Shown here one piece after another: positions 3,295-51,772 of a DNA stretch of 64,000 nt. A program made the position numbers and the translations under genes. The first letter of the stretch is position 1. Every line of letters starts with the position of its first letter. Under the pieces are notes generated by a model. The model was given only the letters and a program-made list of their open reading frames with translations, was not told where the DNA came from and made no database searches. Where the stretch lies: the sequence record NC_061441.1. One strand, written 5' to 3'.

Positions 3295-4323
3295 TTATTC
3301 CTCCAATACGCCACTAATCTCCGTAAACATATTTTTGTACACTAAACTCCCACCAAGTTTGTCCAATCTGTCCACCAGCACATATAGCTTCGGTGTCGTG
3401 CGCATGTTAGCCCACGTCTTCTCGTTCGGGTCGAGTCCGCCTACAGTAGGCACAATCACCAGACTGAGGTTTTTATTGGCTCGAACGAAACCGATATCCA
3501 GATGCGTCCTGTTTATAGTCCTGATAAGCCTATTGATTGCGTCCAAACCAACAGGCTTGTTGAATTCCGTATCATTGACAGTGTTGACCAAACTAATGAG
3601 AATTCCTTTGTCTTTCGTGTCGATATCAAACAGGTCTGCTTTCAGATCTGCCACAGTTGATGCCGAGAAGTATGACACGTCGTGGTTAAGATCTTTCAGG
3701 CAGGAGCCTAAGGCACGCGCCGATTCGATGTGAGCCACGTTGTCATCCCGAAGAATATACACAGGCGCATCTGGCTGGTGGGTGCGTTTCGATATCAAAT
3801 CAATAAGCTCGCAAGAGGGTCGACCAACAGTAGCCAGCCCCTTGTTAGCAATATAGAATTTGTCACGATACACGTCGTATATGTTAGGAGGCATATACTT
3901 CATGTAGTCATCGTCCAGACTAAGAATCATTCGAGGCTTAGTTAATTGAACGACCAATTGCATACTACGGAGCGAAGCCTTGTACTCTGTATCGGAGAGC
4001 ACACGGCTAATCGGCAGATACTGCACAACCACAAAGCGTTCGTCGATTGAGTCAACGACAGACCGTATGAGTGTGCTGCCTAATGTAGGTCCAGCAGAGA
4101 ACTGGGTAACGATCATCAAACTACCTGCAACCAAGCTACGTGTCTTAGCTACCGTCTGACCGCTACCCAGCTCGACTACGGAGGACTCCCACGTTATGGC
4201 TGGATCGTCTCGTCCGCTATCGGCATGTACATAAGCTGCGCCACACCAGAGACAGGCTCCAAGAATGTAAGCAGCAATACGTTGTCCGGATCGGCCTCTG
4301 CGGGATTGACCGTTTCGGGCCAT
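3295..4323 (-). CDS. Secreted periplasmic-binding-protein-like (ABC substrate-binding/sensor-domain-like) protein (342 aa)
   Basis: Strong RBS (GAGAGGAG, 7 nt from ATG). Signal peptide (basic n-region, AAYILGACLWCGAAYVHA|D). Alternating beta/alpha pattern with KPRMILSLDDD resembling the KPDxIIAxDD motif of type I PBP sensor domains. Confidence 0.55.
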   Translation of the reverse strand: MARNGQSRRGRSGQRIAAYILGACLWCGAAYVHADSGRDDPAITWESSVVELGSGQTVAKTRSLVAGSLMIVTQFSAGPTLGSTLIRSVVDSIDERFVVVQYLPISRVLSDTEYKASLRSMQLVVQLTKPRMILSLDDDYMKYMPPNIYDVYRDKFYIANKGLATVGRPSCELIDLISKRTHQPDAPVYILRDDNVAHIESARALGSCLKDLNHDVSYFSASTVADLKADLFDIDTKDKGILISLVNTVNDTEFNKPVGLDAINRLIRTINRTHLDIGFVRANKNLSLVIVPTVGGLDPNEKTWANMRTTPKLYVLVDRLDKLGGSLVYKNMFTEISGVLEE

Positions 4324-5021
4324 AGCACTTCTCCTCTCTCGTCAGTGACGTAAGGAATGCCGGCGCCTTTACCCAATCCATGTCGTAAAGCCCAAACAGT
4401 GTCGGCATTCTCCTGCACGAACACTAACCCTTTGACTTGCACATCGGACGTTGCATTCTCCAGTACCTCAACGCGCTTCTCAAGAAGCTCGGCATCGGAT
4501 TGCAGCACACGAATAGCAGACAGGTTAGAGTTAACGCGCTGGTTCATGTTGTTGAACATGGTGAAGAACGAGTTGTTCATCGCCGTGCGAACGCCGTCCG
4601 TATAGGACTTTGGAATTAGTTCATCGTTATCAAACGTTGTTACGCCTGTACGCGCGAGAACTTTACCGGTAAGACGTCCACCACTTGCGCTGATAATCTG
4701 AGGAGCAGGCAAATCAGCCTCATCCCAGATTTGAACAGTGGTCATCACCGTATTGTAGTCGGTCTCTTCCTGCCACGTATTCTTATACGGTGCAGTAGCC
4801 GTTTTGGACTTACGACGCATGACTTTCTTATAGCCAGCGTTCGATCCATCGGCGATGATCCAGAGACCGTTCAGTGGAAATACGTGAGTAATAGGTTCGG
4901 CGAACGAAAGAATAATCGTAACGTCGGCGCCTACCTTGTACGCAATATCGTTCGACGCAGAAAGCCCTTGCTGTTGGGCAAGAGCAATCAGCGTGTCCAC
5001 GTAGTTAGTCAACTGGCTCAT
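4194..5021 (-). CDS. Fibre-associated virion protein (275 aa)
   Basis: Fibre repeat (ELIPKSYTD), short coiled coil, C-terminal 'WALRHGLG..PYVTDERG' module related to the C-terminus of 44..1669. Confidence 0.65.
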   Translation of the reverse strand: MSQLTNYVDTLIALAQQQGLSASNDIAYKVGADVTIILSFAEPITHVFPLNGLWIIADGSNAGYKKVMRRKSKTATAPYKNTWQEETDYNTVMTTVQIWDEADLPAPQIISASGGRLTGKVLARTGVTTFDNDELIPKSYTDGVRTAMNNSFFTMFNNMNQRVNSNLSAIRVLQSDAELLEKRVEVLENATSDVQVKGLVFVQENADTVWALRHGLGKGAGIPYVTDERGEVLWPETVNPAEADPDNVLLLTFLEPVSGVAQLMYMPIADETIQP

Positions 5022-5481
5022 CCGAAACTCCTAACGATTGTAAAAGTGAAGAACTTGTATCGGAGAAGGCCTTAGCTATTGCTTTAGCGGCAACCTTATC
5101 GACAACGAGAGTGCTGATTCGGCCTTTGGTGTTGCATACAATTGTCTGCGGTGCATACTGTGCAAGCGCCAAAGCGAATAGCAGATGGTTGCCTAGATCA
5201 CCTGAGATAGAAACTTCCACGTCAAGTTCAGGCACGTAGATGTTCTGGTTGATTTCGGCAACAAACTGCGCCAGCGCAACAGGGTCGAACTCAGGGAGCG
5301 CTGTATCATAATCCTCAACAAGATCAATCTGTCTTGTTTCGGGATAGTAACGAAATGCAGCAGGGTCAGAGATGATGCGACCAAATAAATCGTCGCTCAC
5401 CTCGATGCAATACTCATCCGTCTTTTCACGTACACGACCAACAATGCTGTTGTTCGCTGGATTGATTCTGATAATAGGCAT
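5005..5481 (-). CDS. Probable tail-fibre assembly/chaperone protein (158 aa)
   Basis: Small acidic ORF directly downstream of a fibre gene; size and position typical of fibre chaperones. Confidence 0.5.
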   Translation of the reverse strand: MPIIRINPANNSIVGRVREKTDEYCIEVSDDLFGRIISDPAAFRYYPETRQIDLVEDYDTALPEFDPVALAQFVAEINQNIYVPELDVEVSISGDLGNHLLFALALAQYAPQTIVCNTKGRISTLVVDKVAAKAIAKAFSDTSSSLLQSLGVSDEPVD

Positions 5482-5483
5482 CG

Positions 5484-6305
5484 TTAGTCTCCCACTGCCG
5501 TGTACCAGAAGTCCCAGCCTACAGTATTGGTGCCGCTGGACTTAATGGTAAAGCCACCTAACAAGGCGTTCTCGTTCACTGCACTAGTACCATCAAGGTT
5601 GTAGAGCGTAAACGTCTTAGCCTGGTTCGTTGCAGCATTCAAGAACGTAATCTGAATGCTAAGGCAGCGGTTGATGAACGGGCTGTTGAAGATAACGTGA
5701 ATGGTATCAGTAGTTGATTTGTTCACGATGCGACCCATGTTCTGGGTAAAGCCCGTGTTCATATCTCTGTTACTACCGACCCATGCGTTTGGAATCACAG
5801 CACCTGTTACAGGGTCAAGTGCTTGCGCTGTTCGATACTCGTCGATAGCAGCATCACGCCCCGGGTTACCAGTAGGACCCGTCGCACCAGTAGGACCGAC
5901 TGCTCCAGTGTTACCAGTAGCGCCAACAGGACCAGTGTTGCCCGTAGGACCATTACGTCCTCTTGGACCACGAGGGCCTGGGCAGCCGTCTTCACCGTCA
6001 CGACCGTCACGACCGTCAGCACCAGGCAGACCGCGTAAGCCGTCTTTACCCTGCTTGCCTTCGCGCCCTGACTTGAGCTGGTCGGCAGTAGGCAAACCAA
6101 TAACGTTCGTCTGACTGCCATCAGGCCAAATGAGTGTTAACGTACCTGTTGTCGTATCGAACTGAGCACCCTGAGCACCTGGAATCTTCGCAGCTTCTTG
6201 CGGACTGATAAACGCGACCGCAGTAGAAGTCTTCTTACCTAGCACTTTACCGACGGGGTCATTACCACCGTCGATGAGTGAAGGATTAATGCGTGTTAAA
6301 GACAT
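5484..6305 (-). CDS. Collagen-like fibre protein D (24 Gly-X-Y triplets, C-terminal beta-sandwich tip domain)
   Basis: GREGKQGKD...GNPGRD repeat; N-terminal FDTTTGTLTL..GLPT domain; C-terminal 'VIFNSPF...GFTI...WDFWYTAVG' typical fibre-tip domain. Confidence 0.8.
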   Translation of the reverse strand: MSLTRINPSLIDGGNDPVGKVLGKKTSTAVAFISPQEAAKIPGAQGAQFDTTTGTLTLIWPDGSQTNVIGLPTADQLKSGREGKQGKDGLRGLPGADGRDGRDGEDGCPGPRGPRGRNGPTGNTGPVGATGNTGAVGPTGATGPTGNPGRDAAIDEYRTAQALDPVTGAVIPNAWVGSNRDMNTGFTQNMGRIVNKSTTDTIHVIFNSPFINRCLSIQITFLNAATNQAKTFTLYNLDGTSAVNENALLGGFTIKSSGTNTVGWDFWYTAVGD

Positions 6306-6315
6306 GGGTGAGCTC

Positions 6316-6519
6316 CTAACCAGTCAGTGTTGTCCAATCAGGTTGACCCGATTGCCCGGCTTCTGGGTTTTTGACTTTCGTGTTATTGATTGTCATACGA
6401 ACCCAACGGACAGTACCGTCCGCATCTTGCCACCGAACCTTCGTGCCACCGTATGCTAAATTAGCTACCCATCTGTCTCTGCTTGGGTCTTTGAATGCTA
6501 AACGTGCATATGCAGGCAT
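6316..6519 (-). CDS. Small Trp-rich fibre adaptor protein (67 aa)
   Basis: RBS TAAGGAG; three short (R/K)xxxxxxW repeats like the N-terminus of 9449..11467. Confidence 0.7.
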   Translation of the reverse strand: MPAYARLAFKDPSRDRWVANLAYGGTKVRWQDADGTVRWVRMTINNTKVKNPEAGQSGQPDWTTLTG

Positions 6520-6528
6520 AAGTTCTCC

Positions 6529-9405
6529 TTACTCGATCTCACTTGGTTCCCAGCACAGAATAGGACGGCGCCATACTTGGAACACACCGATAGGGTTAGA
6601 ACGGAAGTCATCAATGTACGCATCGAAAGTACGACCGCCACTGTTACCGCTTTTCATCAGTGTCCGTAAGTCCTGATACCAAGAAGCACGTCCACCTGAG
6701 TCTGCTTCGAACAGTCCTTCCCACACCATATCAAAAGCGCCATTCCATGCGTTGAAGTGATGAGAAGAATATGCACCATCACCAACAGAACACAGCACCA
6801 TGTACTGGTAGTCTTTCACGCACGGAATCATGTAGTCATTACCGCGTGGAATAGCCGTGCCATTGTTGTTGAAGATACACTCCCAACCAGTACGGTCTGC
6901 GGCGCCCGTGGTCAAGAACAGAGGACGACGAATGATCATCATAATCCCGTTCGCCCAGCCGTCATTGCTTGACTTCTCGCAGTACGCATTGCAGCGTAAC
7001 GCACGGTCTACCGTAAACGTGGTAGAGTTTGAGAAGTCGCGGCAGTAATAGTTCGAACCCCACTTAGGCAGATACTCTGCTGGTGGCACGAAGAAGTGAC
7101 GTTCAGCCAATTCAACTTCACCGTAAGCATCATACGCAAACACGATGTACTCGAAGCCTGCTTCAATCTGAATGTTATGGCCCTGTGAGCCATAGCCACT
7201 CCACTTCCACACAACCTGCCAATCGTTTGTGTCTCGCTCAGGCATTTCCGTGATGAGCTGATACGGACGCTCGTACACATGCCACACCTTCCCTTCTTCT
7301 GTCGTGTTGATGTACAGAGAGTTAGGGTCGTTGATGTTACCGTTAGACGTACCACAGTAAACTTTATGCGATGCACCAGCAGTGTTGTAGATAGTGCCTG
7401 AGCCGATACCTGCGAACATATCCCAGTTCATCATCAGGTGCGATGTACACATTTCGTTCTGGCCTGCACCATCAGATGTTGAGAGCAGATACTCATTGAG
7501 GTCTTTGAACGCATAGCGCACATAGTTAGAGCCAGCACGGTTAACGCGGTGTACCCAGTCATGCGATTGAACTTTCGGCACAGGGAAGCATGGGTTAGTG
7601 ACAGACACGACGAAGTTTTTAGTTTCGTACATCGGCAGTTTCTTGAAGCGGTTATCACGAATTGTTACCGTGTGCTTCATGCCATATGTCTGCGCACCGT
7701 CCATACCGCCTAACACTTTATAGTACGACTCATGCGCACTCTTGGTGTTTTCGTACAGACTAGTGATGCCAAGCCCAACGTTGCCGTCACGGTCAGTGCC
7801 GCAGCAGAAGGGCACGTTACCTGAATCGAAGTCAAAGCCAACAGAGTAATAGCTGTCAGGTGAACTTGATTTAGGGCCCCAGTAGAGTTCGGTGTAAGCA
7901 GAACCCTCACCGATACCTGGCTCACCGAACACGCAGTATGCAGCACGATACACATACTGACTGCCCTGGAACACACGGCGTGATGCGCCAATGCGATACA
8001 TAGCAGCAGGAAGACCGCCCTGTACACGGTTAACGTCAGCCGTATCATACGACACAACGAAGACATAACAGTCGGTGCCGATTGAGTTGAGAAACGCAGC
8101 ACAGGCAGCAGCGTTAGTTGCACCTGGAGCTGTACCTTCGGCCGATGCGTGAATGTCGAACACACGGCGCTCAAGCAACGCAAGGTCAGACTTACGAATC
8201 TTATAGACGTTCAGGCCACGCGTATCTCGGTACGTCACACCATTATAGACAGTGTAGCCATAGTCACCAGTGTCTAGGTAACGCTGATAACCAACTACGT
8301 GCGAGAACAGTTTACTACGTGCTTGCAGCGACTGACCATTCTGATTCGACCAACTAACCGATACATCACCAGCAGCCATACGTGCTGCCCAGTCATCAGG
8401 CTTGTATGGGTATGTGGTAACATCGAAGTTCACACCGTACGCGGAGCCTGGTTCTACGCAGCATGGATTACGATAGATGATTGGTGGATCAATCACTATG
8501 TCATCAGGGATATCGACTTGACCGCAGTACAGTTGCTTCCACGTACCAGGCTGACCTCCGAGCGAACTAGGTCCAGCAGCAGGTGTTGTGTTGAACTGAT
8601 AGATAGCAGACGTGCGGTAGTTAATCTGGTTGTGAAGCTGAGGAACGTTCGTCCACGCAATGTGATTACCGAACGAGTTAATGCTTTTGTCGTGTGCGGC
8701 AGGAGTCGAGACAACATAAGCCTGACCGTTACTGCGAATGCCGAGTGGGTTGAAGATAGCGTTGAAGTTAACGTTACCCTCGTAGGCATTCTTCTGCAAT
8801 ACAATCAGGTGAACTCCATTGCGGTGCGCCTCACGTAAAGCAGTGAGCATCGCTGTAGGCATACTCTGGTTAGTCGCAGACAACAGCAGCATGACACAAC
8901 TGAACTGTTTGAAGTAGCGATAGTCACCGTTGTAGCCATAGGCGCCTGCGTTAATCTCTTGCCAGCTATGCGCCAACATATCGAGAGGCATACGTTGCAT
9001 GTAACCAACGAGCTGGCCCCACGACTCCATGGCCGTATCATCGTTGACAGGAGCAAGGTCGGAGATGACCAGCATCGTACTGCCGTTTGTGATGTTTGCG
9101 TTGAAGCCACGCTGGGTCAGCAGGTGGCGGAACACACCCATGTTGTTGATAGACTTGTTACGGTAGTTGCCCATCCACCCGTAGTTAGAATCTACAAGAG
9201 GGCTACCGTCTCGAACAAATCGACCATTCATATAAACAGAGGCAAAGCCGCAGACGTATGCTTGCGCGTGTCCGTCCACTACGAACGAAGTAAAGCGGGA
9301 AGCATCTACCGCCATCGCATTAACAGCAGCCTCAGAGCCATTGCCGGGACTACCACTAAACACAGGAGTGATGCCTCGTGCGTACAGGCAACTTTGTTGC
9401 AGCAT
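6529..9405 (-). CDS. ILEI/PANDER (GG-lectin)-domain virion fibre protein (958 aa)
   Basis: ILEI-like segment RGLNVYKI...FDIHAS...CYVFVVSYD...YRAAYCVFGEPGIGEG; C-terminal tandem aromatic-rich repeats. Confidence 0.7.
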   Translation of the reverse strand: MLQQSCLYARGITPVFSGSPGNGSEAAVNAMAVDASRFTSFVVDGHAQAYVCGFASVYMNGRFVRDGSPLVDSNYGWMGNYRNKSINNMGVFRHLLTQRGFNANITNGSTMLVISDLAPVNDDTAMESWGQLVGYMQRMPLDMLAHSWQEINAGAYGYNGDYRYFKQFSCVMLLLSATNQSMPTAMLTALREAHRNGVHLIVLQKNAYEGNVNFNAIFNPLGIRSNGQAYVVSTPAAHDKSINSFGNHIAWTNVPQLHNQINYRTSAIYQFNTTPAAGPSSLGGQPGTWKQLYCGQVDIPDDIVIDPPIIYRNPCCVEPGSAYGVNFDVTTYPYKPDDWAARMAAGDVSVSWSNQNGQSLQARSKLFSHVVGYQRYLDTGDYGYTVYNGVTYRDTRGLNVYKIRKSDLALLERRVFDIHASAEGTAPGATNAAACAAFLNSIGTDCYVFVVSYDTADVNRVQGGLPAAMYRIGASRRVFQGSQYVYRAAYCVFGEPGIGEGSAYTELYWGPKSSSPDSYYSVGFDFDSGNVPFCCGTDRDGNVGLGITSLYENTKSAHESYYKVLGGMDGAQTYGMKHTVTIRDNRFKKLPMYETKNFVVSVTNPCFPVPKVQSHDWVHRVNRAGSNYVRYAFKDLNEYLLSTSDGAGQNEMCTSHLMMNWDMFAGIGSGTIYNTAGASHKVYCGTSNGNINDPNSLYINTTEEGKVWHVYERPYQLITEMPERDTNDWQVVWKWSGYGSQGHNIQIEAGFEYIVFAYDAYGEVELAERHFFVPPAEYLPKWGSNYYCRDFSNSTTFTVDRALRCNAYCEKSSNDGWANGIMMIIRRPLFLTTGAADRTGWECIFNNNGTAIPRGNDYMIPCVKDYQYMVLCSVGDGAYSSHHFNAWNGAFDMVWEGLFEADSGGRASWYQDLRTLMKSGNSGGRTFDAYIDDFRSNPIGVFQVWRRPILCWEPSEIE

Positions 9406-9425
9406 GTTATGTCCTTAAGATCGGC

Positions 9426-9450
9426 AAGAGGGGCCGAAGCCCCTTCTTTT
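9426..9450. terminator. GC-rich hairpin with C(UUCG)G loop on the minus strand; T-tract on the plus strand
   Basis: AAGAGGGGC-CGAA-GCCCCTTCTTTT lies between two fibre genes. Confidence 0.6.
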
Positions 9451-11467
9451 AGTCGAATACTACGTTTGTGATTGCGATGTAGTCCATGTTGATACCATCA
9501 CCCCTATCCCAACCAGACGACACGTACAGCCAAATCTCTTGACCGACAGGTACGTCTACGTTTATCGTGTAGGTCTGAATTGCGGTGGTATTCAGTGGAT
9601 GGAAGACATTGTTCGGCGCAGTGCGCTCGTACCAATCAAGGCCACTGTGCCATGAACCCTGTTTACCTGAGTAGCGAATATCAATAGTGATTTGAGTAAT
9701 GCGGCGCGTGAAGAAGTTGTTCCATTTGAACCAACCTTTCGAGCCACCCCAAAGAACACCATAATCACCATCAGGCGAACGTACCTGCGACCAGAAGTCA
9801 CCAAAGCCACGACCACCAGTATGTTCAATCTGATAGCAGTACCAAGGGAAACTATCTGCAACAGGAGGTTGTGCGTTGTCGCCTTCAATCGTCACGCAAC
9901 GATAAGGAACCGTGAAGTCACTAACGTTGATATGTGGCGGCTGAATAGGACAGTACACATAGTACGACCAATCACATCCGATAGGTGCAGTCACGCGTAC
10001 AGTGATGTTGGCGCGAAGCACATGCTCAGGGTATTTCCAAAATTCGAGTGTACCAGTTTTCCCAGCTACAACGATTGACGTATCGAGCAGGTTCATGTTC
10101 TGGTCAAACACTTCAAACTTCGTATCAAACGAATTGGCTACACAAACAATAAGCTGTGCGCGAATGTCCGTTTGAGTTCCTAATGCAAAATTATCTTCTG
10201 TAGTTGGATGCCCGGCAGAGTACACGCTATAACTCTGACATGGGTGCATAAACTCACGCGCACCACGTTCACCAGGACAGTACAGGCTGTAGAAACAGCT
10301 CGCAAGTGATGCAGCGTTACCGAAGTCCTTGCTAACCACACGCACCATGATATCACACGCAACACCTTTCGGGTCGAAGTAGAAGTACAGGTAACCTTCT
10401 CCTGTCTGTGCGTCAAGTGTTGTTGCGATACGTCTGCCTGATTGATAGACCTCGATGAAGTCGAAGGTTTCCCATGACGTGTAATCGAGATACATCCAGC
10501 CAGCTACCCAACCGATGAAGTGATAATACTCAAACGCGTTCGAGTTCTGAATGCGTTCTGTAATAGGCCAGACAGTTGCATGACAGGGCGCTGGGAAGAT
10601 AGGGCTGCCGATATAATCTGGATGAATGACGTCAGGGAAGTTGATAACGTCATACGCTGCCTGACTATCGAGAGCCAAACCGCCACGGTCAGAAGGTGCT
10701 GCAAGACGAGGCGGATAGACTTCTAAGCTCCAGCTATAGCCTTGCGTAGTACGCACACGCACCATGATACGCATATCAGCAGCGTCAGGGTCGAACTGGA
10801 ACTTGATACGCGAACGACCAACAACCTTACCGCATGTCGAAGCAACACGCACACCCATGTGGTACACGTCAACGCTTGCACCAGCAGGAGCATACGATGC
10901 AATCATCAGCTCCACGTAGCCTTCAACAGCAGGCATTGCGTAGATTGTTTCAGTGATTGTTGCACCACGACCATGAGTGGACGCATACGGTACGTTAGGG
11001 TTAGCATATGTACCAAGCCCTGAACGCGAGGCCACGCCGACAGGGTCGTAGGTCTCAATAGTCTTAATACCAGGGCGATTGATAGATCGTCCAGTAGGTG
11101 GAGCAAATGAGTTAACAAGGCCGAAGCCAGTACGCCCAGCATCAGGCAAATCAAAGCCAGCAGGATAGCCTTTAAGAATATCATACTTCTCACGACCACC
11201 TGAGCCGATGCCATTACCAGAGCCTTTAGTTGTCGATGTAGGACCGCCGCCACACGCACCAGTTTCGAGATTCGAACAAGGGTCATCGTAAGTGGGATCG
11301 AACGAGTCATCAATTAGATGCCAGCGTTGACCCCACTGATTTCTGACGCTGAACTTCTCAGGAGTAAGAGGAGTCCAGTCACCTTCTTGTGTGCGTATGA
11401 ACATAGGCGTGTCAACACAATCGTGCCAACCGTTATTCGCAGCATTACGAACGCGAAAACGTGCCAC
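9449..11467 (-). CDS. Multi-domain fibre tip/receptor-binding-like protein (672 aa, GTG start)
   Basis: RBS TAAGGAG. N-terminal triple (R)N..W motif, three tandem ~90-aa beta-sandwich repeats each ending YPP/YCP, C-terminal lectin-like domain. Confidence 0.7.
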   Translation of the reverse strand: MARFRVRNAANNGWHDCVDTPMFIRTQEGDWTPLTPEKFSVRNQWGQRWHLIDDSFDPTYDDPCSNLETGACGGGPTSTTKGSGNGIGSGGREKYDILKGYPAGFDLPDAGRTGFGLVNSFAPPTGRSINRPGIKTIETYDPVGVASRSGLGTYANPNVPYASTHGRGATITETIYAMPAVEGYVELMIASYAPAGASVDVYHMGVRVASTCGKVVGRSRIKFQFDPDAADMRIMVRVRTTQGYSWSLEVYPPRLAAPSDRGGLALDSQAAYDVINFPDVIHPDYIGSPIFPAPCHATVWPITERIQNSNAFEYYHFIGWVAGWMYLDYTSWETFDFIEVYQSGRRIATTLDAQTGEGYLYFYFDPKGVACDIMVRVVSKDFGNAASLASCFYSLYCPGERGAREFMHPCQSYSVYSAGHPTTEDNFALGTQTDIRAQLIVCVANSFDTKFEVFDQNMNLLDTSIVVAGKTGTLEFWKYPEHVLRANITVRVTAPIGCDWSYYVYCPIQPPHINVSDFTVPYRCVTIEGDNAQPPVADSFPWYCYQIEHTGGRGFGDFWSQVRSPDGDYGVLWGGSKGWFKWNNFFTRRITQITIDIRYSGKQGSWHSGLDWYERTAPNNVFHPLNTTAIQTYTINVDVPVGQEIWLYVSSGWDRGDGINMDYIAITNVVFD

Positions 11468-11476
11468 ATGTTCTCC

Positions 11477-11968
11477 TTATGGGCGAACCCAAATAGCTCC
11501 TGGAGCTACTTCGTTGTCTATAGCAGGGTCAGTGTCTTGAACAAACACCTGTACTGCACCAGGATTACCGGGAGCACCCGTTGCGCCAGTAGGACCAGTT
11601 GGACCGGCAGGACCACGATTACCCACATAACCCTGTTTACCCATCTGACCATCAGAACCACGAGGACCTGGGCAACCGTCAGTACCGCGACGACCATCGT
11701 TACCCATGAGACCGTCGATACCGTCACGACCAGAAGGACCAACACCACCAGCAGGGCCATAGCCTATGCTGTGAATGGTAGGCAGCCCAGCAATCTGCAA
11801 CTTACCAATCGACGGTATATTCAGAGCAAGCACACCCGTCAGAGCATCAAACGAACCGTTGAGTGTGCTGTCATCTTCGGCAGTGTCTACTGTCAGACCG
11901 CCTTGAGTCGCTACGACAGGACCAGATGCGTTGGTCTTGACTAGCGCTATATCAACTTTTTCTACCAT
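11477..11968 (-). CDS. Collagen-like fibre protein C (23 triplets)
   Basis: GPAGGV...GNPGAV repeat; N-domain FDALTGVLAL..GLPT; ends QDTDP..APGAIWVRP. Confidence 0.85.
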   Translation of the reverse strand: MVEKVDIALVKTNASGPVVATQGGLTVDTAEDDSTLNGSFDALTGVLALNIPSIGKLQIAGLPTIHSIGYGPAGGVGPSGRDGIDGLMGNDGRRGTDGCPGPRGSDGQMGKQGYVGNRGPAGPTGPTGATGAPGNPGAVQVFVQDTDPAIDNEVAPGAIWVRP

Positions 11969-11977
11969 GATTACTCC

Positions 11978-12610
11978 TTACGGCCAGGTAGTGCCTTGAT
12001 CTTTTGTCGGGTCAACCCAGATTGTTCCAGCAGCAACTGCGCCTGGCTGGGTAGCACTCACAATGATAGACAGACGACCAGCAGGACCCGCTGCACCAGT
12101 AGGACCTGTAGGACCTGTAGCGCCAGTCTTACCAGTAGGGCCTGTGCCACCACGAGGACCAGTAGGTCCTGTAGGCCCCATAGGACCTGTGCGACCGTCT
12201 GGGCCAGTAGGACCAACAGGTCCAGGCAGACCATCACGTCCATCTGGACCTGGAATACCCTGTTCCCCGTCAGGACCTATCTCACCGTCACAGCCCTGTT
12301 CACCAGGATTACCGTCACGCCCATCACGACCGTCTTTGCCGTCTGCACCAGTTTCACCACGACCACCCTGACGACCTTCTGGTATGTCAGCAGCAGTAGG
12401 GAAACCATTGACCTTAACAGTCTGGCCATTAGCAAACTTGAGCGTTAGAATACCGCTGGTGGCATCGAACGACGAGTCGGCAGTAAGCTCGGACGGCACG
12501 TCTGCATCAGAAGGATTGATAGTCAGCGTACCGCGCGAAGCTCTGATTGGAGTGGGCGTAGAGGACGAACCAGCTTGAATGAGGCCCGTGTTTACTTTAA
12601 TCAGACCCAT
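11978..12610 (-). CDS. Collagen-like fibre protein B (about 34 triplets)
   Basis: GRQGGR...GPAGRL repeat; N-domain [14 protein letters not shown]; ends [17 protein letters not shown]. Confidence 0.85.
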
Positions 12611-14052
12611 TACGTTTTCTCCGCTTTAGCAACGATATCCGTATTGTGCACCAACACATCTCCTACGAAGTAACAGTCAAACGGGTCAACGTCAATATCA
12701 ACCGTCTGCACCTGCTCATCGACACGAACAAATTCAGATACAGCGATAGGTCCTTTACGACCTAAGACAGTTTGGCCCATGCGAACATCACGCGCAGGAA
12801 CATAGCGCCATACGGACTCATCATAAATCAATACTGGGTGTTCGTGAGTGAACTTCTGACCATTGATAACATAGTAATGATCTTCTTGGCCGAGCTTCAA
12901 CGCTTTCACCGTAGCGTACACGGTGTTGCCTTTGAGACTAGGCGAAGACCAATTACGAAACTCCTTAGGCTGGTTCGAGTAACCAAGCAGCGCATCGCCG
13001 ACACGCAAGTTCTCTACAGCTTTAGGACCAACGATAGTGTTCACGGTACTGCCAAACACGATACAACCAGATGTTGCAGTGTTGATAGGGTTACGCGCCA
13101 CGACAGTCAGAGCAGAACGCACCGTAACAGTCGGACGTGAAGGTTGACCCATATCAGTTACGAGACAGCTAATGGTGCCTTTGATTGTACGATCAGCACC
13201 TAAGCCTAAACGCAGATAGAAGTTAACAATGCAGGTGTTTGTCTCGACGGCATCCAGAGTCACACCTTCTGTGGTTGTGATAGTCCATTTATACTTATAC
13301 GGACCAACGCCACCACGAGCATTGACAGGCAGATACGCCAGCGACGTAAACACATCAGAGCCTTGCACTGTACGTTGACCCACCATGTACAGATTAGACA
13401 CTGACGCAGCAAGAGGTGTGATTGTAGGCAGAGGCGGCGCAGGAGTAACGTTGGCTGTAGGGTACAACCAAACGAACACTTTACCGTCTGTAGGCTGCGT
13501 GTTAGATAGCACGGCTGTAGTGATAGGCGCTGGACCAGTAGCACCAGTAGCCCCCGCAATACAGCTAGGACCATCATTACCACGAGGGCCGATAGGACCA
13601 GTAGCACCAGTCGCGCCGTCAGGACCAGTAGGACCGTCAGGCCCTTGACGCCCTGTATCTCCTGGAGGACCGTCTTCACCGTCACGTCCAGGGTCACCTA
13701 CAGGACCAGTCTTACCTCTATTGCCTACACCGCCCGGACAACCTTGTTTGCCGGTCTCACCATCACGCCCGTCACGACCATCTCGACCAGGAGAACCCGG
13801 AGCGCCTCGACGCCCAGGTTTACCTTCGCCAAACATCGCAACAGTGGGCAACCCAGGGATGTTCACCACATCCCCGTTCTGCTTGATGAATACCAACACA
13901 CCTGTCTTGCTGTTAAATCTTACGCTGGCGAGCTGTGTTAATGTTGCCACATCGGAGTTTTCAAACTTAGCCACTCCGTCAACACCGATCAATGATTTAC
14001 CTTCATCGTTCGGAGTTGTTTCGACTTGCGAAAGTTTTAACTGTGTTGTCAT
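12610..14052 (-). CDS. Collagen-like fibre protein A with Ig-like domain and C-terminal Hint (intein-like) domain (480 aa)
   Basis: 29+3 Gly-X-Y triplets; PKD/Ig-like segment ([11 protein letters not shown]); Hint motifs SG|CIVFGS, FTHEHP, TVDIDV, VLVHN|T. Confidence 0.85.
12643..13065 (-). other. Hint/mini-intein domain (141 aa), no endonuclease
   Basis: Cys1 codon at 13063-13065, block B TxxH (THEH), block F Asp, penultimate His-Asn ending at 12643, +1 Thr. Confidence 0.8.
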
Positions 14053-16391
14053 TTCGGTTCAACCTTAATGCACAAGTTACCAGTCAGCTTCGAACCATAG
14101 CTAGTGATCTGCGAATCAACGATACGCACCTTAGCGACGATATCAATGAAGCCTTGTGGTTGGTTCTCTTTCAGCACCGTGAACATCTGCGTCAGGCTCA
14201 CGTTCGAATACGCAATCACTTCTGTCAGACTCGTATCAGAGGTAACTACGTTGAAGCCTGCGCTGCCAGTACCTTTGAGTCCACGGCCATATTCAGCTTC
14301 GGACACGCCAGGCATCTTAAACGACAGGACGTATTCGATATGCTCTTTGCCACTCGTAGCAGCAAAGCCTGGACCAAGTTGACACTGGAAGTCAGCGATG
14401 CACGTCAGGAACACACCCTTAGAGAAGTCGATACGTTGAACGATGGTCAGTTCTTCGGAGTCTTCGACGTTCTGTTGGATGTTGTACATGTTCTTAGGGT
14501 CAGCTTCTTCGGCCAGTGCCTGTGTATTGCTGATCGTAATCTCTGGCCATGTGCCTTTGATAACGATACCTTCACCCTGAATGATTGAAGGAGCAGCGAT
14601 AGGTACGTCGATCGGAGGCAGACCTTGACGCTTGAACATGTAGCCTGTTGGCGTAGGAATAGCGTCGATGATAACACCATCAACTGAACTATCTTTTGAA
14701 CCTACAGCCATGACGTTCTCGAAGATTGTTATCTCAACGAGTGTATCGGCAGGTACCTGCGAAGTTGTTTTCAGTACGTTGCCAGCTACCGTGAAGTCAA
14801 GCGGATGAACGGTCAGACCGCCCATTGCCATTACACAGTGCGCTTTATTCAGTGGTGTAGTTGGCAGAACAAATGTATCAGCATCATAAGGCAGGCGATA
14901 CTGAGCAACACGAATACGAGTAGACCAGTTGGCGCGTTCTTCATAGCGAGCCACGTAGAATGAATACTTCTGACCCGATGGAATTGCTTCGGTCAGCGTT
15001 ACCTTGTTACCAGCATTGAGCTTATAGACCGTCGTTGGCTGCCAAGTAGAACCGACAACGCAGAAGATCATGTCAACGCTATCAATCGGCTTGTTGCCAA
15101 GAGTGAACGTAGTAGTCTGGCCGTCACCTGTGCCTTCGTAGGTATCGAACAACACCACATGGCCCTGCGACGGTTCAATACGGAACTGTCTGAGGTCAAG
15201 CGTCATACGCTGTTCAGGATAGGACGAAAGCAGAAGCTGATCATCAACAACGCTGTATGCAACACGAGGCTGCAAGACACCCGACGTACCTACCAGAAGG
15301 TCAGTAGAGCTATCAAGAATCTCGGACAGCGTGTAGCGCATCTTATCAGGAGTTGCTGTGGTCACGACAGAACTAAACAGCATCTTGCCTGGAGGTACGA
15401 ACAACGTTGCCATTGTCTGACGAGAGCTACCACCAACAGGCGCCCAATAAGGCTTCGCGTCTTTACCGCGCATCAATGCCCATGCTTCAGGCACGTCATT
15501 GTTATCAGGCCAAGGTAGACCAGCAGTAGGCGTAGTCGGGTTAGTGATTCGACGCCATACAGCAATCGTTGTCTGGGCAGATACGAATGGAATCGCACCG
15601 TCTTGGTTAACAAGCTGTCCGCCTATGAACTTGAAGTGACGACACGCACCAGCGCCTGTACCTGAGATTGTTTGAATAAGCACAATCTCATTCGCTTTCA
15701 ACACGGTAGACAGCGAAGCAATCTTGAACGTGTTAGCGTTAATGAATCCAGACGAGGTAATCTGACCACTGAACACACGGTCATGCTCGCTGAATGCCCA
15801 GTAGTAGGAGCCTGCTCCATAACGATACGCAGTTCCTGGGGAGCGCGAGCCATCAGAGTTAACGTGCATGTCGAGTACAGACACGGCATTGAACACGTTG
15901 TCGCTCAAGCTCGGCAAATTTTCAAGCGTGGCCACACTCGGAATAGAAGTGTAGTCGGCCATCTTAACAGCAAGAATCTTTTGAATGTCCTGCTGAATAT
16001 GAACGAGTAAGCTCACACGGCTGATACTGTTAGGTACAGCGATGATAGGCTCTTGCAGGACAATGTGACCAAACGGTCTATTGTCAGAAAGCATAATCAG
16101 TATTTCACCGACACGCTTCAACTGCTCCCCAGCGGCGTAGCTGAGTTTTATGTCAAAGATAAAGCGAGCGCTGTTCTCGGTAAGAACCTGAACATATGAC
16201 AATGCGCCCGACGCAAGCTCGTTGCCAAGTAACTGCTCTGGAACCACTGCTGGGTTAGAGCCTACAAAGTCACCTGCTTTAAACGACACTGGCTGGACAG
16301 CGAGTCCGCCAGAGTTAGCGTTCGCAACGGCCTGTTCTCCCTGAGGCGTTAGACGCAAAACGTCAACGTAGATAGATTCAGTGGCCATCAA
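14049..16391 (-). CDS. Baseplate/tail-collar fibre-attachment protein (780 aa)
   Basis: N-terminus 'LRLTPQGEQAVANA...' resembles tail-collar/fibre N-domains; repeated 'GDGQTTTFTL / GVLQPRVAYSV..LLLSSYP' Ig-like modules; follows the wedge genes. Confidence 0.6.
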   Translation of the reverse strand: MMATESIYVDVLRLTPQGEQAVANANSGGLAVQPVSFKAGDFVGSNPAVVPEQLLGNELASGALSYVQVLTENSARFIFDIKLSYAAGEQLKRVGEILIMLSDNRPFGHIVLQEPIIAVPNSISRVSLLVHIQQDIQKILAVKMADYTSIPSVATLENLPSLSDNVFNAVSVLDMHVNSDGSRSPGTAYRYGAGSYYWAFSEHDRVFSGQITSSGFINANTFKIASLSTVLKANEIVLIQTISGTGAGACRHFKFIGGQLVNQDGAIPFVSAQTTIAVWRRITNPTTPTAGLPWPDNNDVPEAWALMRGKDAKPYWAPVGGSSRQTMATLFVPPGKMLFSSVVTTATPDKMRYTLSEILDSSTDLLVGTSGVLQPRVAYSVVDDQLLLSSYPEQRMTLDLRQFRIEPSQGHVVLFDTYEGTGDGQTTTFTLGNKPIDSVDMIFCVVGSTWQPTTVYKLNAGNKVTLTEAIPSGQKYSFYVARYEERANWSTRIRVAQYRLPYDADTFVLPTTPLNKAHCVMAMGGLTVHPLDFTVAGNVLKTTSQVPADTLVEITIFENVMAVGSKDSSVDGVIIDAIPTPTGYMFKRQGLPPIDVPIAAPSIIQGEGIVIKGTWPEITISNTQALAEEADPKNMYNIQQNVEDSEELTIVQRIDFSKGVFLTCIADFQCQLGPGFAATSGKEHIEYVLSFKMPGVSEAEYGRGLKGTGSAGFNVVTSDTSLTEVIAYSNVSLTQMFTVLKENQPQGFIDIVAKVRIVDSQITSYGSKLTGNLCIKVEPK

Positions 16392-49829: not shown

Positions 49830-50730
49830 GAGCCAGAGTCATACGGCTTGGGTTTTGCAGTTTGACTTCACCTTTATGTACGGCAGTGAATGGCTCATGA
49901 GCATTCTCACCACGGCCTGAACGATATGCAGCTTCATTGAAACCGTCGAATAGCGTTACAACCCAGCCGGTGGACTTATCAGAACATTCACCACACGCTT
50001 TGTCCCAGCTAATCTTACCGCAAGTACGTCCACCAGCATTCACTGCATAACTTACTTGCTCGGTACCTTTATACAGGTCCTGAGCTTTCATCGCTTTGAA
50101 CGTCACGCGAGTAGAAGATTCCGAGCGAGGCATCATCTTCTCTTTCAGTGCTTCAATGTCCAGAGAACTCCAGAACGATTCAAACAGCGCAGCGAACTTC
50201 TGCTCAATAGGCAGGCCGATTGTGTTGATCTGTGCGATAGTGCTGGAGCTGTCGTTCAGCACACGGTTAAGGAAATAGCCACCGAGAATTACAGGCATCT
50301 GGGTGCCTTGTGCGCCAGCCGTAAGGCCAGCACGTTTCGCGTACATATCACACATACCGATAGCAAGACGCGCCAACGTCATGAACGTCTGCTTCTCGGT
50401 ACTGTTAGCGATCTCCGTGTAGATACGCGCAGCGATTGCAGGCACTACAGTACGTTTCGCCACGCTTAGGATATCTTCTGGAGAGATGGCCTGACCGAGT
50501 TTCTTCTTGGCAGCCAGTTCGAAAGCATTAATCAGGCTTGCTTTGTTCGCTGGTGTCAGAGACTCGCTCAACTTGATAGTCGTCTGCTCGGAGCTGTTCA
50601 CCAGACTCGGCTGCGGTGCTACTTTCAGTCTGCGGACTCCCGTCGTGTTCAATCGAGCTACTGTCATTTGTTTCTTCCTGAGTAGGAGCCTGTAGATATT
50701 GCAGCAGGCCAGAGTTAATGATCTCCTCAT
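49792..50730 (-). CDS. Hypothetical (putative head-associated) protein; likely start 50667
   Basis: RBS AGGAAG before MTVARLN; contains LSES and RSES motifs. Confidence 0.65.
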   Translation of the reverse strand: MRRSLTLACCNIYRLLLRKKQMTVARLNTTGVRRLKVAPQPSLVNSSEQTTIKLSESLTPANKASLINAFELAAKKKLGQAISPEDILSVAKRTVVPAIAARIYTEIANSTEKQTFMTLARLAIGMCDMYAKRAGLTAGAQGTQMPVILGGYFLNRVLNDSSSTIAQINTIGLPIEQKFAALFESFWSSLDIEALKEKMMPRSESSTRVTFKAMKAQDLYKGTEQVSYAVNAGGRTCGKISWDKACGECSDKSTGWVVTLFDGFNEAAYRSGRGENAHEPFTAVHKGEVKLQNPSRMTLALAKSWARGALRG

Positions 50731-51772
50731 TCACATCCTGACCACGAAGCGTAGCGAGATGTGCGAGGTAATTGAGTGCGGGTTCGACCATACCCAGATT
50801 GCGACAGCCCCAATAGGCTATGTCATAACACAGGTCTAAATTAATAGCGGTCTGGTCGAACAGGAAACCTTTTGGATTCTGCTTGGTCGCTTCAATGCCC
50901 TGAACAGCCATACCGATAGCATTGATGTTATCGCCGTGTCGGTAGAAGATATCGGCCAGCATCGAATACGCTTCAATGCGGTCAGGACGGAATGCTATAG
51001 CGCGATAACACGCACACACCGCTTCCTGAGTGAAGCCCTGCTTGTATGCGGCTTTCGCTAGTTCGATGTTGGCGATTGTAACGTAATCCGCCCACTTAGC
51101 AATGCCTGCCAAGCGGTCTACTTCGCGCCGTGCGTCTTCGAGCAAATCAGGACGTTCGTAATACGCAACGGCATAGCAGAGTTCACGCGCATAGTAGAAA
51201 CTGCAACGGTCATCATGCGGATAGTCACCAACATCACGTCCAAGCTCCAGCAGATAGTTACGGCCTTTGCTGTGGTCTGGATAGTGATCGGTGGCGAACG
51301 GAGCTTCAACCGTTCTGAGTTGCTGTCCAGGCTTACGCGAGGTCAGCACTTCATGCGCACGATATTTCCAGAAATAAGAACGACGGCGGTAGGCCTTCAT
51401 CTGACTGTAGTGGCTGTCACCATTGCGCATCAGAATCCAAACAGCTTCTGCCTTCTTAATGCCTTGCATTGTGCGCAGCTTCTCAACCCAATCAGGGTCA
51501 TCGAAACGCTCATCAATATCAAGCCACACTACAAGGTCATCTTCGGAGAATGGCGTAGCGGCCAGTTCACGACTTGCACCAAGGTTACGCTCTTGACTAA
51601 CATCAAACGTGTGGTAGATGTTAGGGTGCGGGAACGCCGAGATGATGTTTGTGGTTTGGTCTTCGCTGCCTGTATCGACAATGCTAATCGCATCAGCCTT
51701 GGCTACGTGCTTCAACCACTCACCCATATTCTTTTCTTCATTGCGACAGATAGCCGCTACGCAAATTCTCAT
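50528..51772 (-). CDS. GT2-family glycosyltransferase with C-terminal TPR repeats
   Basis: ICRNEEKNM, IVDTGSEDQT, WLDIDE (DxD), WKYRAHE, DDRCSFYYARE, TPR helices (YRAIAFRPDRIEAY). Confidence 0.9.
   Translation of the reverse strand: MRICVAAICRNEEKNMGEWLKHVAKADAISIVDTGSEDQTTNIISAFPHPNIYHTFDVSQERNLGASRELAATPFSEDDLVVWLDIDERFDDPDWVEKLRTMQGIKKAEAVWILMRNGDSHYSQMKAYRRRSYFWKYRAHEVLTSRKPGQQLRTVEAPFATDHYPDHSKGRNYLLELGRDVGDYPHDDRCSFYYARELCYAVAYYERPDLLEDARREVDRLAGIAKWADYVTIANIELAKAAYKQGFTQEAVCACYRAIAFRPDRIEAYSMLADIFYRHGDNINAIGMAVQGIEATKQNPKGFLFDQTAINLDLCYDIAYWGCRNLGMVEPALNYLAHLATLRGQDVNEEIINSGLLQYLQAPTQEETNDSSSIEHDGSPQTESSTAAESGEQLRADDYQVERVSDTSEQSKPD

Follow-up and report, generated by a model that had tools for sequence, protein, structure and literature searches.

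Collagen-like phage fibres are usually seen as simple spacers of variable length. From animals, assemblies of collagen rods are known, i.e., C1q, collectins, adiponectin, collagen VI and collagen IV 7S, in which rods of set length are bundled near their N-termini, tied by cysteines and then diverge to their heads. Collagens of the C1q/collectin type are animal proteins with hydroxyproline, and the cysteines of C1q and collectins mostly lie in the non-collagen N-terminal segment. BclA combines a C1q-like head with highly variable repeat numbers and has no fixed Cys. Among phage fibres, the collagen-like tail-fibre proteins EPclA-D of E. coli O157 prophages are trimeric (PMC3368898).

Here, we studied a stretch of 64,000 nucleotides of sequence record NC_061441.1 (the window), which belongs to pEa_SNUABM_16/18, an Erwinia jumbo phage (Alexandravirus) with the fire-blight bacterium as host. 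The preliminary description had reported four collagen fibre paralogues. All four ORFs are found in the ORF list on the minus strand, namely A (5484..6305; 273 aa), B (11477..11968; 163 aa), C (11978..12610; 210 aa) and D (12610..14052; 480 aa), and further features of the locus given below lie on the same strand. They are the only genes with the shared N-terminal domain in the whole phage record. Each follows the described layout, i.e., F[DN]xxTGxLxL...G[LF]PT, exactly 6 residues and then Gly-X-Y, with 23-34 uninterrupted triplets. All are Collagen repeat proteins in terms of Pfam (PF01391; 52-55 bits vs. a cut-off of 27.2; E 1.4e-14 for A) and match phrog_8745 (E 3e-25 to 4e-36), while D also matches phrog_38766 (E 4e-260). 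They fit the four-fibre family of the PaBG/Lu11/Y3 clade, which is marked by the N-domain up to G[LF]PT, the 6-aa linker and a Cys in X of triplet 10. The locus sits amid baseplate and fibre genes, and this synteny is kept in all relatives. Long antisense ORFs within the collagen genes were discarded as by-products of the triplet repeat. No virion proteomics data for A-D were found in the Dickeya and PaBG papers.

Like EPclA-D, the four proteins place a predicted collagen triple helix between the N- and C-terminal globular parts of a phage fibre (PMC3368898). The PfN, PCoil and PfC end domains described for EPclA-D were not detected by Pfam in A-D (PMC3368898). That is, Pfam reports only Collagen in B and C and no phage-fibre N- or C-terminal family in A or D. 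Furthermore, collagen length varies between EPclA-D alleles but is nearly fixed in A-D, and a register-locked Cys is not described in the available part of that source (PMC3368898).

The N-terminal anchor domain covers 6069..6305 in A, 11759-11968 in B, 12377-12610 in C and 13825-14052 in D, as given by the alignment. No Pfam family covers it, and an ESM Atlas look-up returned only unnamed viral clusters, with structural rows at TM <= 0.5. The AF2 model of the C monomer (pLDDT 68) is confident only for the core of the N-domain and for the C-terminal cap, and Foldseek found no match for it below E 0.7 in the PDB.

The C-terminal parts differ strongly. B and C have small caps (24 and 30 aa, respectively). 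A carries a beta-sandwich ‘foot’ (residues 155-272; AF2 pLDDT ~85), for which Foldseek returns the R1/R2 pyocin fibre feet and AP22 gp53 with E-values of 1e-4 to 2e-3 and probability 1.0, though with TM-scores of only 0.19-0.46. Based on this model, the domain appears to have the fold of the receptor-binding foot of R-type pyocin fibres (6CL6, 6CT8, 6CXB) and of gp53 from Acinetobacter phage AP22 (4MTM). The respective Pfam family Gp53-like_C (PF21882) scores 16.8 on A, i.e., below its cut-off of 24.9. In contrast to A, the pyocin and AP22 fibres have beta-helical shafts and no collagen, and their identity to A is 14-17%. A C1q head gave no Pfam match in A-D; the modelled head of A resembles pyocin fibre feet instead. 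Beyond Gly-X-Y, there is no sequence relation between A-D and animal defence collagens.

Behind its stalk, D has a middle domain and then, at the C-terminus, a predicted Hint domain of the bacterial intein-like type (residues 330-470; 12643..13065), after which a conserved 10-aa tail remains. Pfam’s PT-HINT matches with E 4e-5 and a score of 24.3, below the cut-off of 27.7. Among solved structures, the BIL domain 2LWY is the closest (E 9e-6), and its full length aligns end to end with the C-terminal 141 residues. Cys1, T-x-x-H and the terminal H-N are present. Unlike BIL domains, the predicted Hint domain of D would sit at a phage-fibre tip with only the 10-aa tail behind it. Most relatives have Thr after H-N and some have Ala, Val or Met, such that splicing is not assured. 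A mobile intein was rejected, since the Hint-less D of the JA11 type stops short of the Hint region, and the 10-aa tail is absent from it as well; the residue after H-N, which is not always a nucleophile, speaks against it as well.

Three neighbouring genes are of interest. Directly downstream of A, gp105 (5005..5481; 158 aa) matches phrog_32894 ‘tail fiber protein’ (E 1e-74) and is possibly a fibre assembly factor, judged only from the fact that it follows a pyocin-like fibre gene. Between B and A (6529..11467), gp108 (958 aa) and gp109 (672 aa) are large Cys-rich proteins (21 and 14 Cys, ~2.1-2.2%) that are syntenic in all relatives. A sub-threshold Pfam match to ILEI was found in gp108. Both proteins are candidate components of the fibre apparatus, either distal or as partners.

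Stalk composition and length agree with what had been reported before. The N-proximal half is charged, i.e., triplets 1-11 of A-D hold 4-7 K/R, 4-8 D/E and 0-1 Thr, while the rest of the stalk is Thr-rich with 3-10 Thr. Thr-rich GPT-type triplets along with a glycosyltransferase in the same genome are also a feature of BclA-type Bacillus exosporium collagens. The two length classes are real and comprise 23/24 and 33-34 triplet equivalents. Here, B has 23, A 24 and C 34 triplets, while D shows 29 triplets, a Cys (Cys164; TGT, 13561..13563) that replaces the Gly of triplet 30, and 3 further triplets. This Gly-position Cys was found in every D-type sequence read. Over at least eight genera, the triplet counts are almost invariant for each paralogue (B 23, A 24-25, C 34, D 29 plus Gly-position Cys), with 23 triplets in 17/17 B-type sequences and 34 in 80/82 sequences of the 33-34-triplet class. 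Such nearly fixed counts suggest rods that span set baseplate distances. The stalk lengths also differ by exactly ten triplets (23/33 and 24/34).

The codons of the reported cysteines were checked directly. X of triplet 10 is Cys108 in A (TGC, 5982..5984; GCP), Cys99 in B (TGC, 11672..11674; GCP), Cys107 in C (TGT, 12290..12292; GCD) and Cys105 in D (TGT, 13738..13740; GCP). Orthologues keep it in 13/13 cases for each of A, B and C and in 12/13 for D, where JA11 has Asn. Its conservation in related phages, which had been named as a check, is nearly complete: 138/139 unique family proteins, spanning Erwinia to Pseudomonas phages and metagenomes, have Cys in this column (4.26 bits). No other non-Gly column of the family is near-invariant. 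In a stricter set (n=110), the Cys is located exactly 35 residues past the T of G[LF]PT in 105 proteins, at 36 in 2 (1-aa linker insert, triplet 10 retained) and at 32 in 1, while 2 are without it. The remaining X/Y positions of this set show Cys in 12/6278 cases (0.19%). There is also a position-specific conserved patch, with Asp in Y of triplet 7 in 127/139 proteins and Arg in X in 98/139. Our literature search found no account of the stalk register or the triplet-10 Cys.

B and C each have one Cys in the entire chain, such that any disulfide must join another chain or protein. A cystine ring had been proposed earlier; in the form of a ring within one trimer it is disfavoured, since the X side chains of the three chains of a collagen helix point outward and away from each other. 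Individual fibres lose the Cys while others retain it (D in the JA11 group, B in L022, D in L020), which makes an obligatory pairing among all four unlikely.

We also compared the N-proximal stalks of C and D, which are acidic and basic, respectively. The net charge of triplets 1-11 is -3 for C and +3 for D, with means of -2.2 (25 genomes) and +2.8 (19 genomes). Both values are anticorrelated over 20 genomes (Spearman rho -0.81, p 2e-5), which also holds for independent contrasts (r -0.62, p 0.0035 and r -0.79, p 4e-5). Triplets 1-4, 4-7 and 8-13 each show the effect when taken separately, and it disappears in triplets 14-21. In PaBG, L021 and L022, the polarity of C and D is swapped together. 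This anticorrelation is a new finding of our analysis; it is likewise compatible with helices of mixed chains or with selection that acts on total charge. In addition, the stop codon of D overlaps the start codon of C (TAATG). An extra Cys at triplet 20 is concordant between C and D in 22/23 genomes (L014 is discordant), which is not significant given only 3 independent contrasts (2 concordant, 1 unchanged). The preliminary description had taken the strict register as a sign of co-assembly. With the opposite-sign charge co-evolution, the stop/start overlap and the (non-significant) triplet-20 concordance, this reading gains support for at least one pair, C and D, though not in the form of a heterotrimer.

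We put the probability at roughly 0.5 that A-D form four separate homotrimers on a common anchor, of which at least C and D lie alongside each other in register, with a probable disulfide link at triplet 10. That is, A-D would be old paralogues that equip a ‘hairy’ jumbo myovirus with homotrimeric tail fibres, each with a collagen stalk. Their common anchor module, presumably a short N-terminal strand and a single fibre beta-repeat copy ending in G[LF]PT, followed by the 6-residue linker, would set the helix start, such that triplets of the same number lie at equal height in A-D. The long rods at least, i.e., acidic C and basic D, would follow a parallel, in-register course that starts at the anchor and extends to about triplet 13, with complementary charge to hold them. 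The exposed X-position cysteines of triplet 10 would probably become disulfide-bonded once the particle leaves the reducing cytoplasm, and PaBG-like phages may have a second rung at triplet 20. Beyond the paired zone, the rods are expected to diverge to different tips, i.e., the pyocin-like receptor-binding foot for A, small caps for B and C, and a globular domain with a putative self-processing Hint domain for D. Side-by-side, Cys-tied rods of this kind would be a likeness to C1q/collectin/collagen VI-type bundles. More tentatively, and at less than even odds, distinct viral collagen homotrimers may form one composite side-by-side bundle that is charge-matched and disulfide-runged, with rungs exactly ten triplets apart. 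Such a spacing equals one full turn of the 10/3 collagen helix, which would place the rungs on the same side.

The charge pattern, the translational coupling of D and C and the equal register of their first 29 triplets could also be explained if C and D (perhaps also A and B) were chains of mixed collagen heterotrimers, chosen by opposite charge. The preliminary description had named heterotrimeric collagen as one option, against which the stalks themselves speak. Several lineages show Gly-to-Ala/Gln interruptions of D at triplets 5-6, 8 or 16, opposite to an intact Gly in C of the same genome. In PaBG-like phages, the D helix ends at triplet 29, at the Gly-position Cys, while C reaches 34. 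Since both the interruptions and the early helix end are absent from C, and with helix lengths of 23, 24, 34 and 29 for B, A, C and D, mixed chains are unlikely. In Gly-to-Cys mutant collagens, interchain disulfides form at the Gly-position Cys. By this analogy, we read the invariant Gly-position Cys of D as calling for at least two D chains per helix; it would be a lone defect if the helix held one D chain only. Moreover, C and D form the most divergent pair in the N-domain (20% identity) and differ by about 270 residues in their C-terminal parts. We thus give mixed chains only a slim chance.

The remaining alternatives concern the role of the Cys. The most serious, though still improbable, is that the fibres act singly and use the Cys of triplet 10, along with the conserved (K/R)-D patch in triplets 4-7, to dock to one common non-collagen baseplate protein, which would grip every stalk ~9 nm above the anchor via a disulfide or a shared metal. 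This would account for the constant distance between Cys and N-domain across paralogues, for the position-specific patch and for the loss of the Cys in one fibre with the others unchanged. Invariant cysteines are available in the gp6-like wedge protein (C334, 13/13) and gp109 (C64, 12/12). On the other hand, the opposite joint change of C and D charges is left unexplained, and a partner-Cys search over 13 neighbour proteins and 12 relatives identified no lone-Cys loss that matches the lineages with fibre Cys loss. The charge co-variation is equally unaccounted for if the Cys works inside each homotrimer, i.e., as a transient or permanent staple that sets the chain register during folding, which we consider quite unlikely. 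Repetitive Gly-X-Y chains do need a register lock, and D additionally keeps its Gly-position Cys, a site where disulfides link the chains of mutant collagens. A parallel is the cysteine annulus of the P22 tailspike, which is reported to have a role in folding and assembly (PMC3357383). However, three Cys per level cannot all pair in one trimer, registration is already given by the N-domain and the C-terminal cap, and the outward orientation of the X side chains keeps them apart. Very improbable, finally, is a Cys that is no cross-link but a covalent modification site, e.g., for S-glycosylation by the GT2-TPR enzyme of the phage. Such a GT2 and TPR glycosyltransferase is indeed encoded at 50528-51772. 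Its only enzyme match among solved structures is GmaR, which we take to be the O-GlcNAc transferase of flagellin, while the rest are TPR proteins; no S-glycosyltransferase was matched, and the numerous Thr are more obvious targets.

In contrast to the usual picture of collagen-like spacers, the A-D family shows constant lengths, a constant register and one constant Cys across a broad clade of jumbo phages, whose members infect plant and human pathogens. We know of no earlier example of higher-order collagen assembly outside animals. If the rods do bundle and cross-link, this would be the first such assembly known to us, and a composite bundle would correspond, in a virus, to the C1q stalk or collagen VI. 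It would also offer a small hydroxyproline-free model for the design of registered collagen bundles, and it would give a way to approach the baseplate and ‘hairy’ appendages of these phages, which are unexplained so far.

The window encodes four related collagen-stalk tail fibres, all on the minus strand, i.e., A (5484-6305; 24 Gly-X-Y triplets), B (11477-11968; 23 triplets), C (11978-12610; 34 triplets) and D (12610-14052; 29 triplets). Each starts with an N-terminal domain (N-domain) of about 70-79 residues up to its terminal G[LF]PT, followed by exactly six residues and then the Gly-X-Y stalk, whose triplets we count from the N-terminal side. The ORF list and direct counting confirm each of these elements from the preliminary description and show that triplet 10 has Cys at X in every fibre (GCP in A, B and D, GCD in C). 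For B and C, this is the sole Cys of the chain. In D, a Cys takes the place of Gly after triplet 29, and three further triplets follow, which gives 33 triplet-equivalents in all, such that the two described length classes (23/24 vs. 33-34 triplet-equivalents) hold. The same is true for the charged N-terminal and Thr-rich C-terminal halves, i.e., triplets 1-11 of all four fibres are charged with 0-1 Thr, while the remaining stalk is rich in Thr and Pro. A profile of the four N-domains recovers exactly A, B, C and D from the whole phage genome.

The region 5000-15000 is 100% identical to the Erwinia phages pEa_SNUABM_16 and _18 (Alexandravirus, about 266 kb) and shares 80-99% identity with roughly 40 further jumbo phages of Erwinia and Dickeya. 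RefSeq gives the fibre genes (gp106, gp110, gp111, gp112) no more specific name than 'tail fiber protein' or 'virion structural protein'; baseplate genes surround them (PAAR, gp25-like, gp6-like and a 1511-aa tail protein). Relatives including Y3, Lu11, AD1 and the JA phages have been described as 'hairy Myoviridae' (PMC6143709). The gene at 4194-5021 (minus strand) is named 'HNH endonuclease', yet Pfam shows no HNH domain in it, and PHROG families of tail proteins match its N-terminus. It also lies within the fibre operon, overlapping gp105 (5005-5481); the name thus looks wrong. Between A and B, gp108 and gp109 (6529-11467, minus strand; 958 aa with 21 Cys and 672 aa with 14 Cys) are unusually Cys-rich for proteins made in the cytoplasm, and many of their Cys columns are kept across genera. 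For gp108, an ILEI match was found below threshold.

To assess conservation, we collected the corresponding locus by synteny from another 12 phages, which represent at least eight genera (Alexandra, AD1, Y3, SNUABM_7, SNUABM_5, JA11, Yoloswag, Yersinia fHe-Yen9-02, NCTB, PaBG, Lu11, Afa-NA1) and added 12 metagenomic contigs, word-based protein searches and an exhaustive profile search with the N-domain alone. Among 139 unique proteins bearing the N-domain, 138 have Cys at X of triplet 10 (4.26 bits); no other non-Gly column comes close to invariance. Next in conservation are Asp at Y of triplet 7 (127/139) and Arg/Lys at X of triplets 5-7. Within a stricter set of 110, the Cys is found exactly 35 residues past the T of G[LF]PT in 105 cases, at 36 in two, owing to an extra linker residue, and at 32 in one, from which a triplet has been lost, and it is absent in two; all other X/Y positions hold Cys in 12/6278 instances. 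The triplet number is nearly fixed per paralogue (23; 24-25; 34, rarely 33; 29) even at 35-45% identity, unlike the collagen length of E. coli prophage collagens, which is reported to be variable (PMC3368898). The observation of register and Cys is solid and general.

Rare exceptions come from two metagenomic phages: the B fibre of L022 (4261-4785) is without the triplet-10 Cys, and the D-like fibre of L020 (2772-3485) has its only helix Cys at triplet 29. In NCTB-like marine phages, D and C are separated by an additional gene of about 150 aa (L010 11537-11998, L017 3037-3498, L018 1250-1672), which is labelled 'intein domain protein' in NCTB and is missing from the Erwinia clade. The 78-kb record PV550095.1 (named Alcaligenes phage) shows the same order of fibre and baseplate genes as the jumbo-phage module, and Sen-NF (PV359490.1, 108 kb; named Salmonella phage) matches it by tblastn only; both may be partial or mislabelled jumbo phage assemblies.

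What could the conserved Cys do? Collagen X side chains face outward and are far apart among the three chains of one helix, so the previously suggested cystine ring is unlikely within a single trimer. Exposed thiols at equal height on neighbouring rods, on the other hand, could pair in an oxidising medium reached by the particle. Short and long stalks differ by ten triplets, and PaBG-like C and D have a second Cys exactly ten triplets beyond the first; this spacing equals one full turn of a 10/3 collagen helix and would direct the second Cys toward the same neighbour. The Cys is missing from D in the JA11 group and in L020 and from B in L022, while the other fibres of those phages retain it, and we saw no matching Cys loss in neighbouring proteins across the relatives, which disfavours an obligatory four-way Cys network. 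Our literature search on the relatives found no experiment bearing on these fibre proteins, and we treat a disulfide at triplet 10 as a hypothesis.

Next, we considered the end domains. The N-domain matches no Pfam family. Its core, F-D-x-x-T-G-x-L-x-L ... G[LF]PT, corresponds to one unit of a repeat, about 37 residues long, that occurs in 5-9 tandem copies in unrelated long fibre proteins (P0242, P0260, P0263), some of which terminate in an endosialidase-chaperone domain. We thus read the N-domain as one fibre repeat that would serve as anchor and trimerisation unit. The fold modelled for the C-terminal 120 residues of A (5487-5852, minus strand; pLDDT about 85) matches the receptor-binding foot domains seen in R1/R2 pyocin fibres and in AP22 gp53 (E 1e-4 to 2e-3, prob 1.0). 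A is probably a receptor-binding fibre. By its position just downstream, the small gene at 5005-5481 (minus strand) could be the assembly factor of A, as in pyocin loci. B and C each terminate in a short cap (… Q/S-x-x-D/Q-P … G-x-I/L-W-V), which is conserved and modelled as a hairpin. D carries a complete-looking, bacterial intein-like Hint domain (12643-13065, minus strand; Cys1, T-x-x-H and H-N present). A bacterial intein-like domain of solved structure aligns with it along the full length (E 9e-6), and a conserved tail of 10 aa, T-D-I-V-A-K-A-E-K-x, comes after it. Following H-N, most relatives have Thr, and some have Ala, Val or Met. Both the Hint domain and the tail are missing from D of the JA11 group. 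A GT2 glycosyltransferase with TPR repeats (50528-51772, minus strand) could modify the Thr-rich halves of the fibres; GmaR is the one enzyme that it matches among solved structures.

Finally, we evaluated whether the strict register reflects co-assembly, as had been proposed. Helices of mixed chains are unlikely: each chain has a roughly balanced overall charge, helix lengths are unequal, and C lacks the D-type features of the same genomes, i.e., the interruptions in which Ala or Gln replaces Gly (at triplet 16 for L014-L016, at triplet 8 for L022 and at triplets 5-6 for Lu11 and L023) and the helix stop at triplet 29 of PaBG-like D. This favours separate homotrimers. Gly-to-Cys mutant collagens form interchain bonds; by analogy, two or more D chains in one helix would account for the invariant Gly-position Cys of D.

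Co-assembly of distinct trimers is another matter. Within triplets 1-11, C is acidic and D basic (mean net charge per chain -2.2 and +2.8), and their charges are anticorrelated over 20 genomes (Spearman -0.81, p 2e-5; -0.78 for triplets 1-21). Phylogenetically independent contrasts computed on the C tree retain the relation (r -0.62, p 0.0035 and r -0.79, p 4e-5). Triplets 1-4, 4-7 and 8-13 each show it when taken alone, and it is gone in 14-21; in PaBG, L021 and L022, polarity is reversed in C and D alike. Other pairs are weak over triplets 1-11, while over triplets 1-21 (n=12) the charge of A varies with that of D and against that of C. In 22/23 genomes, C and D agree in having or lacking a triplet-20 Cys; for C-D coupling this is suggestive only, since there are just three independent contrasts (two concordant, one unchanged). 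Furthermore, the D stop and C start codons overlap. Together, these sequence signals lend real, though indirect, support to co-assembly of the C-D pair, not as a mixed helix; they point to homotrimers of C and of D standing next to each other, with registers matched from the anchor until shortly after the conserved Cys.
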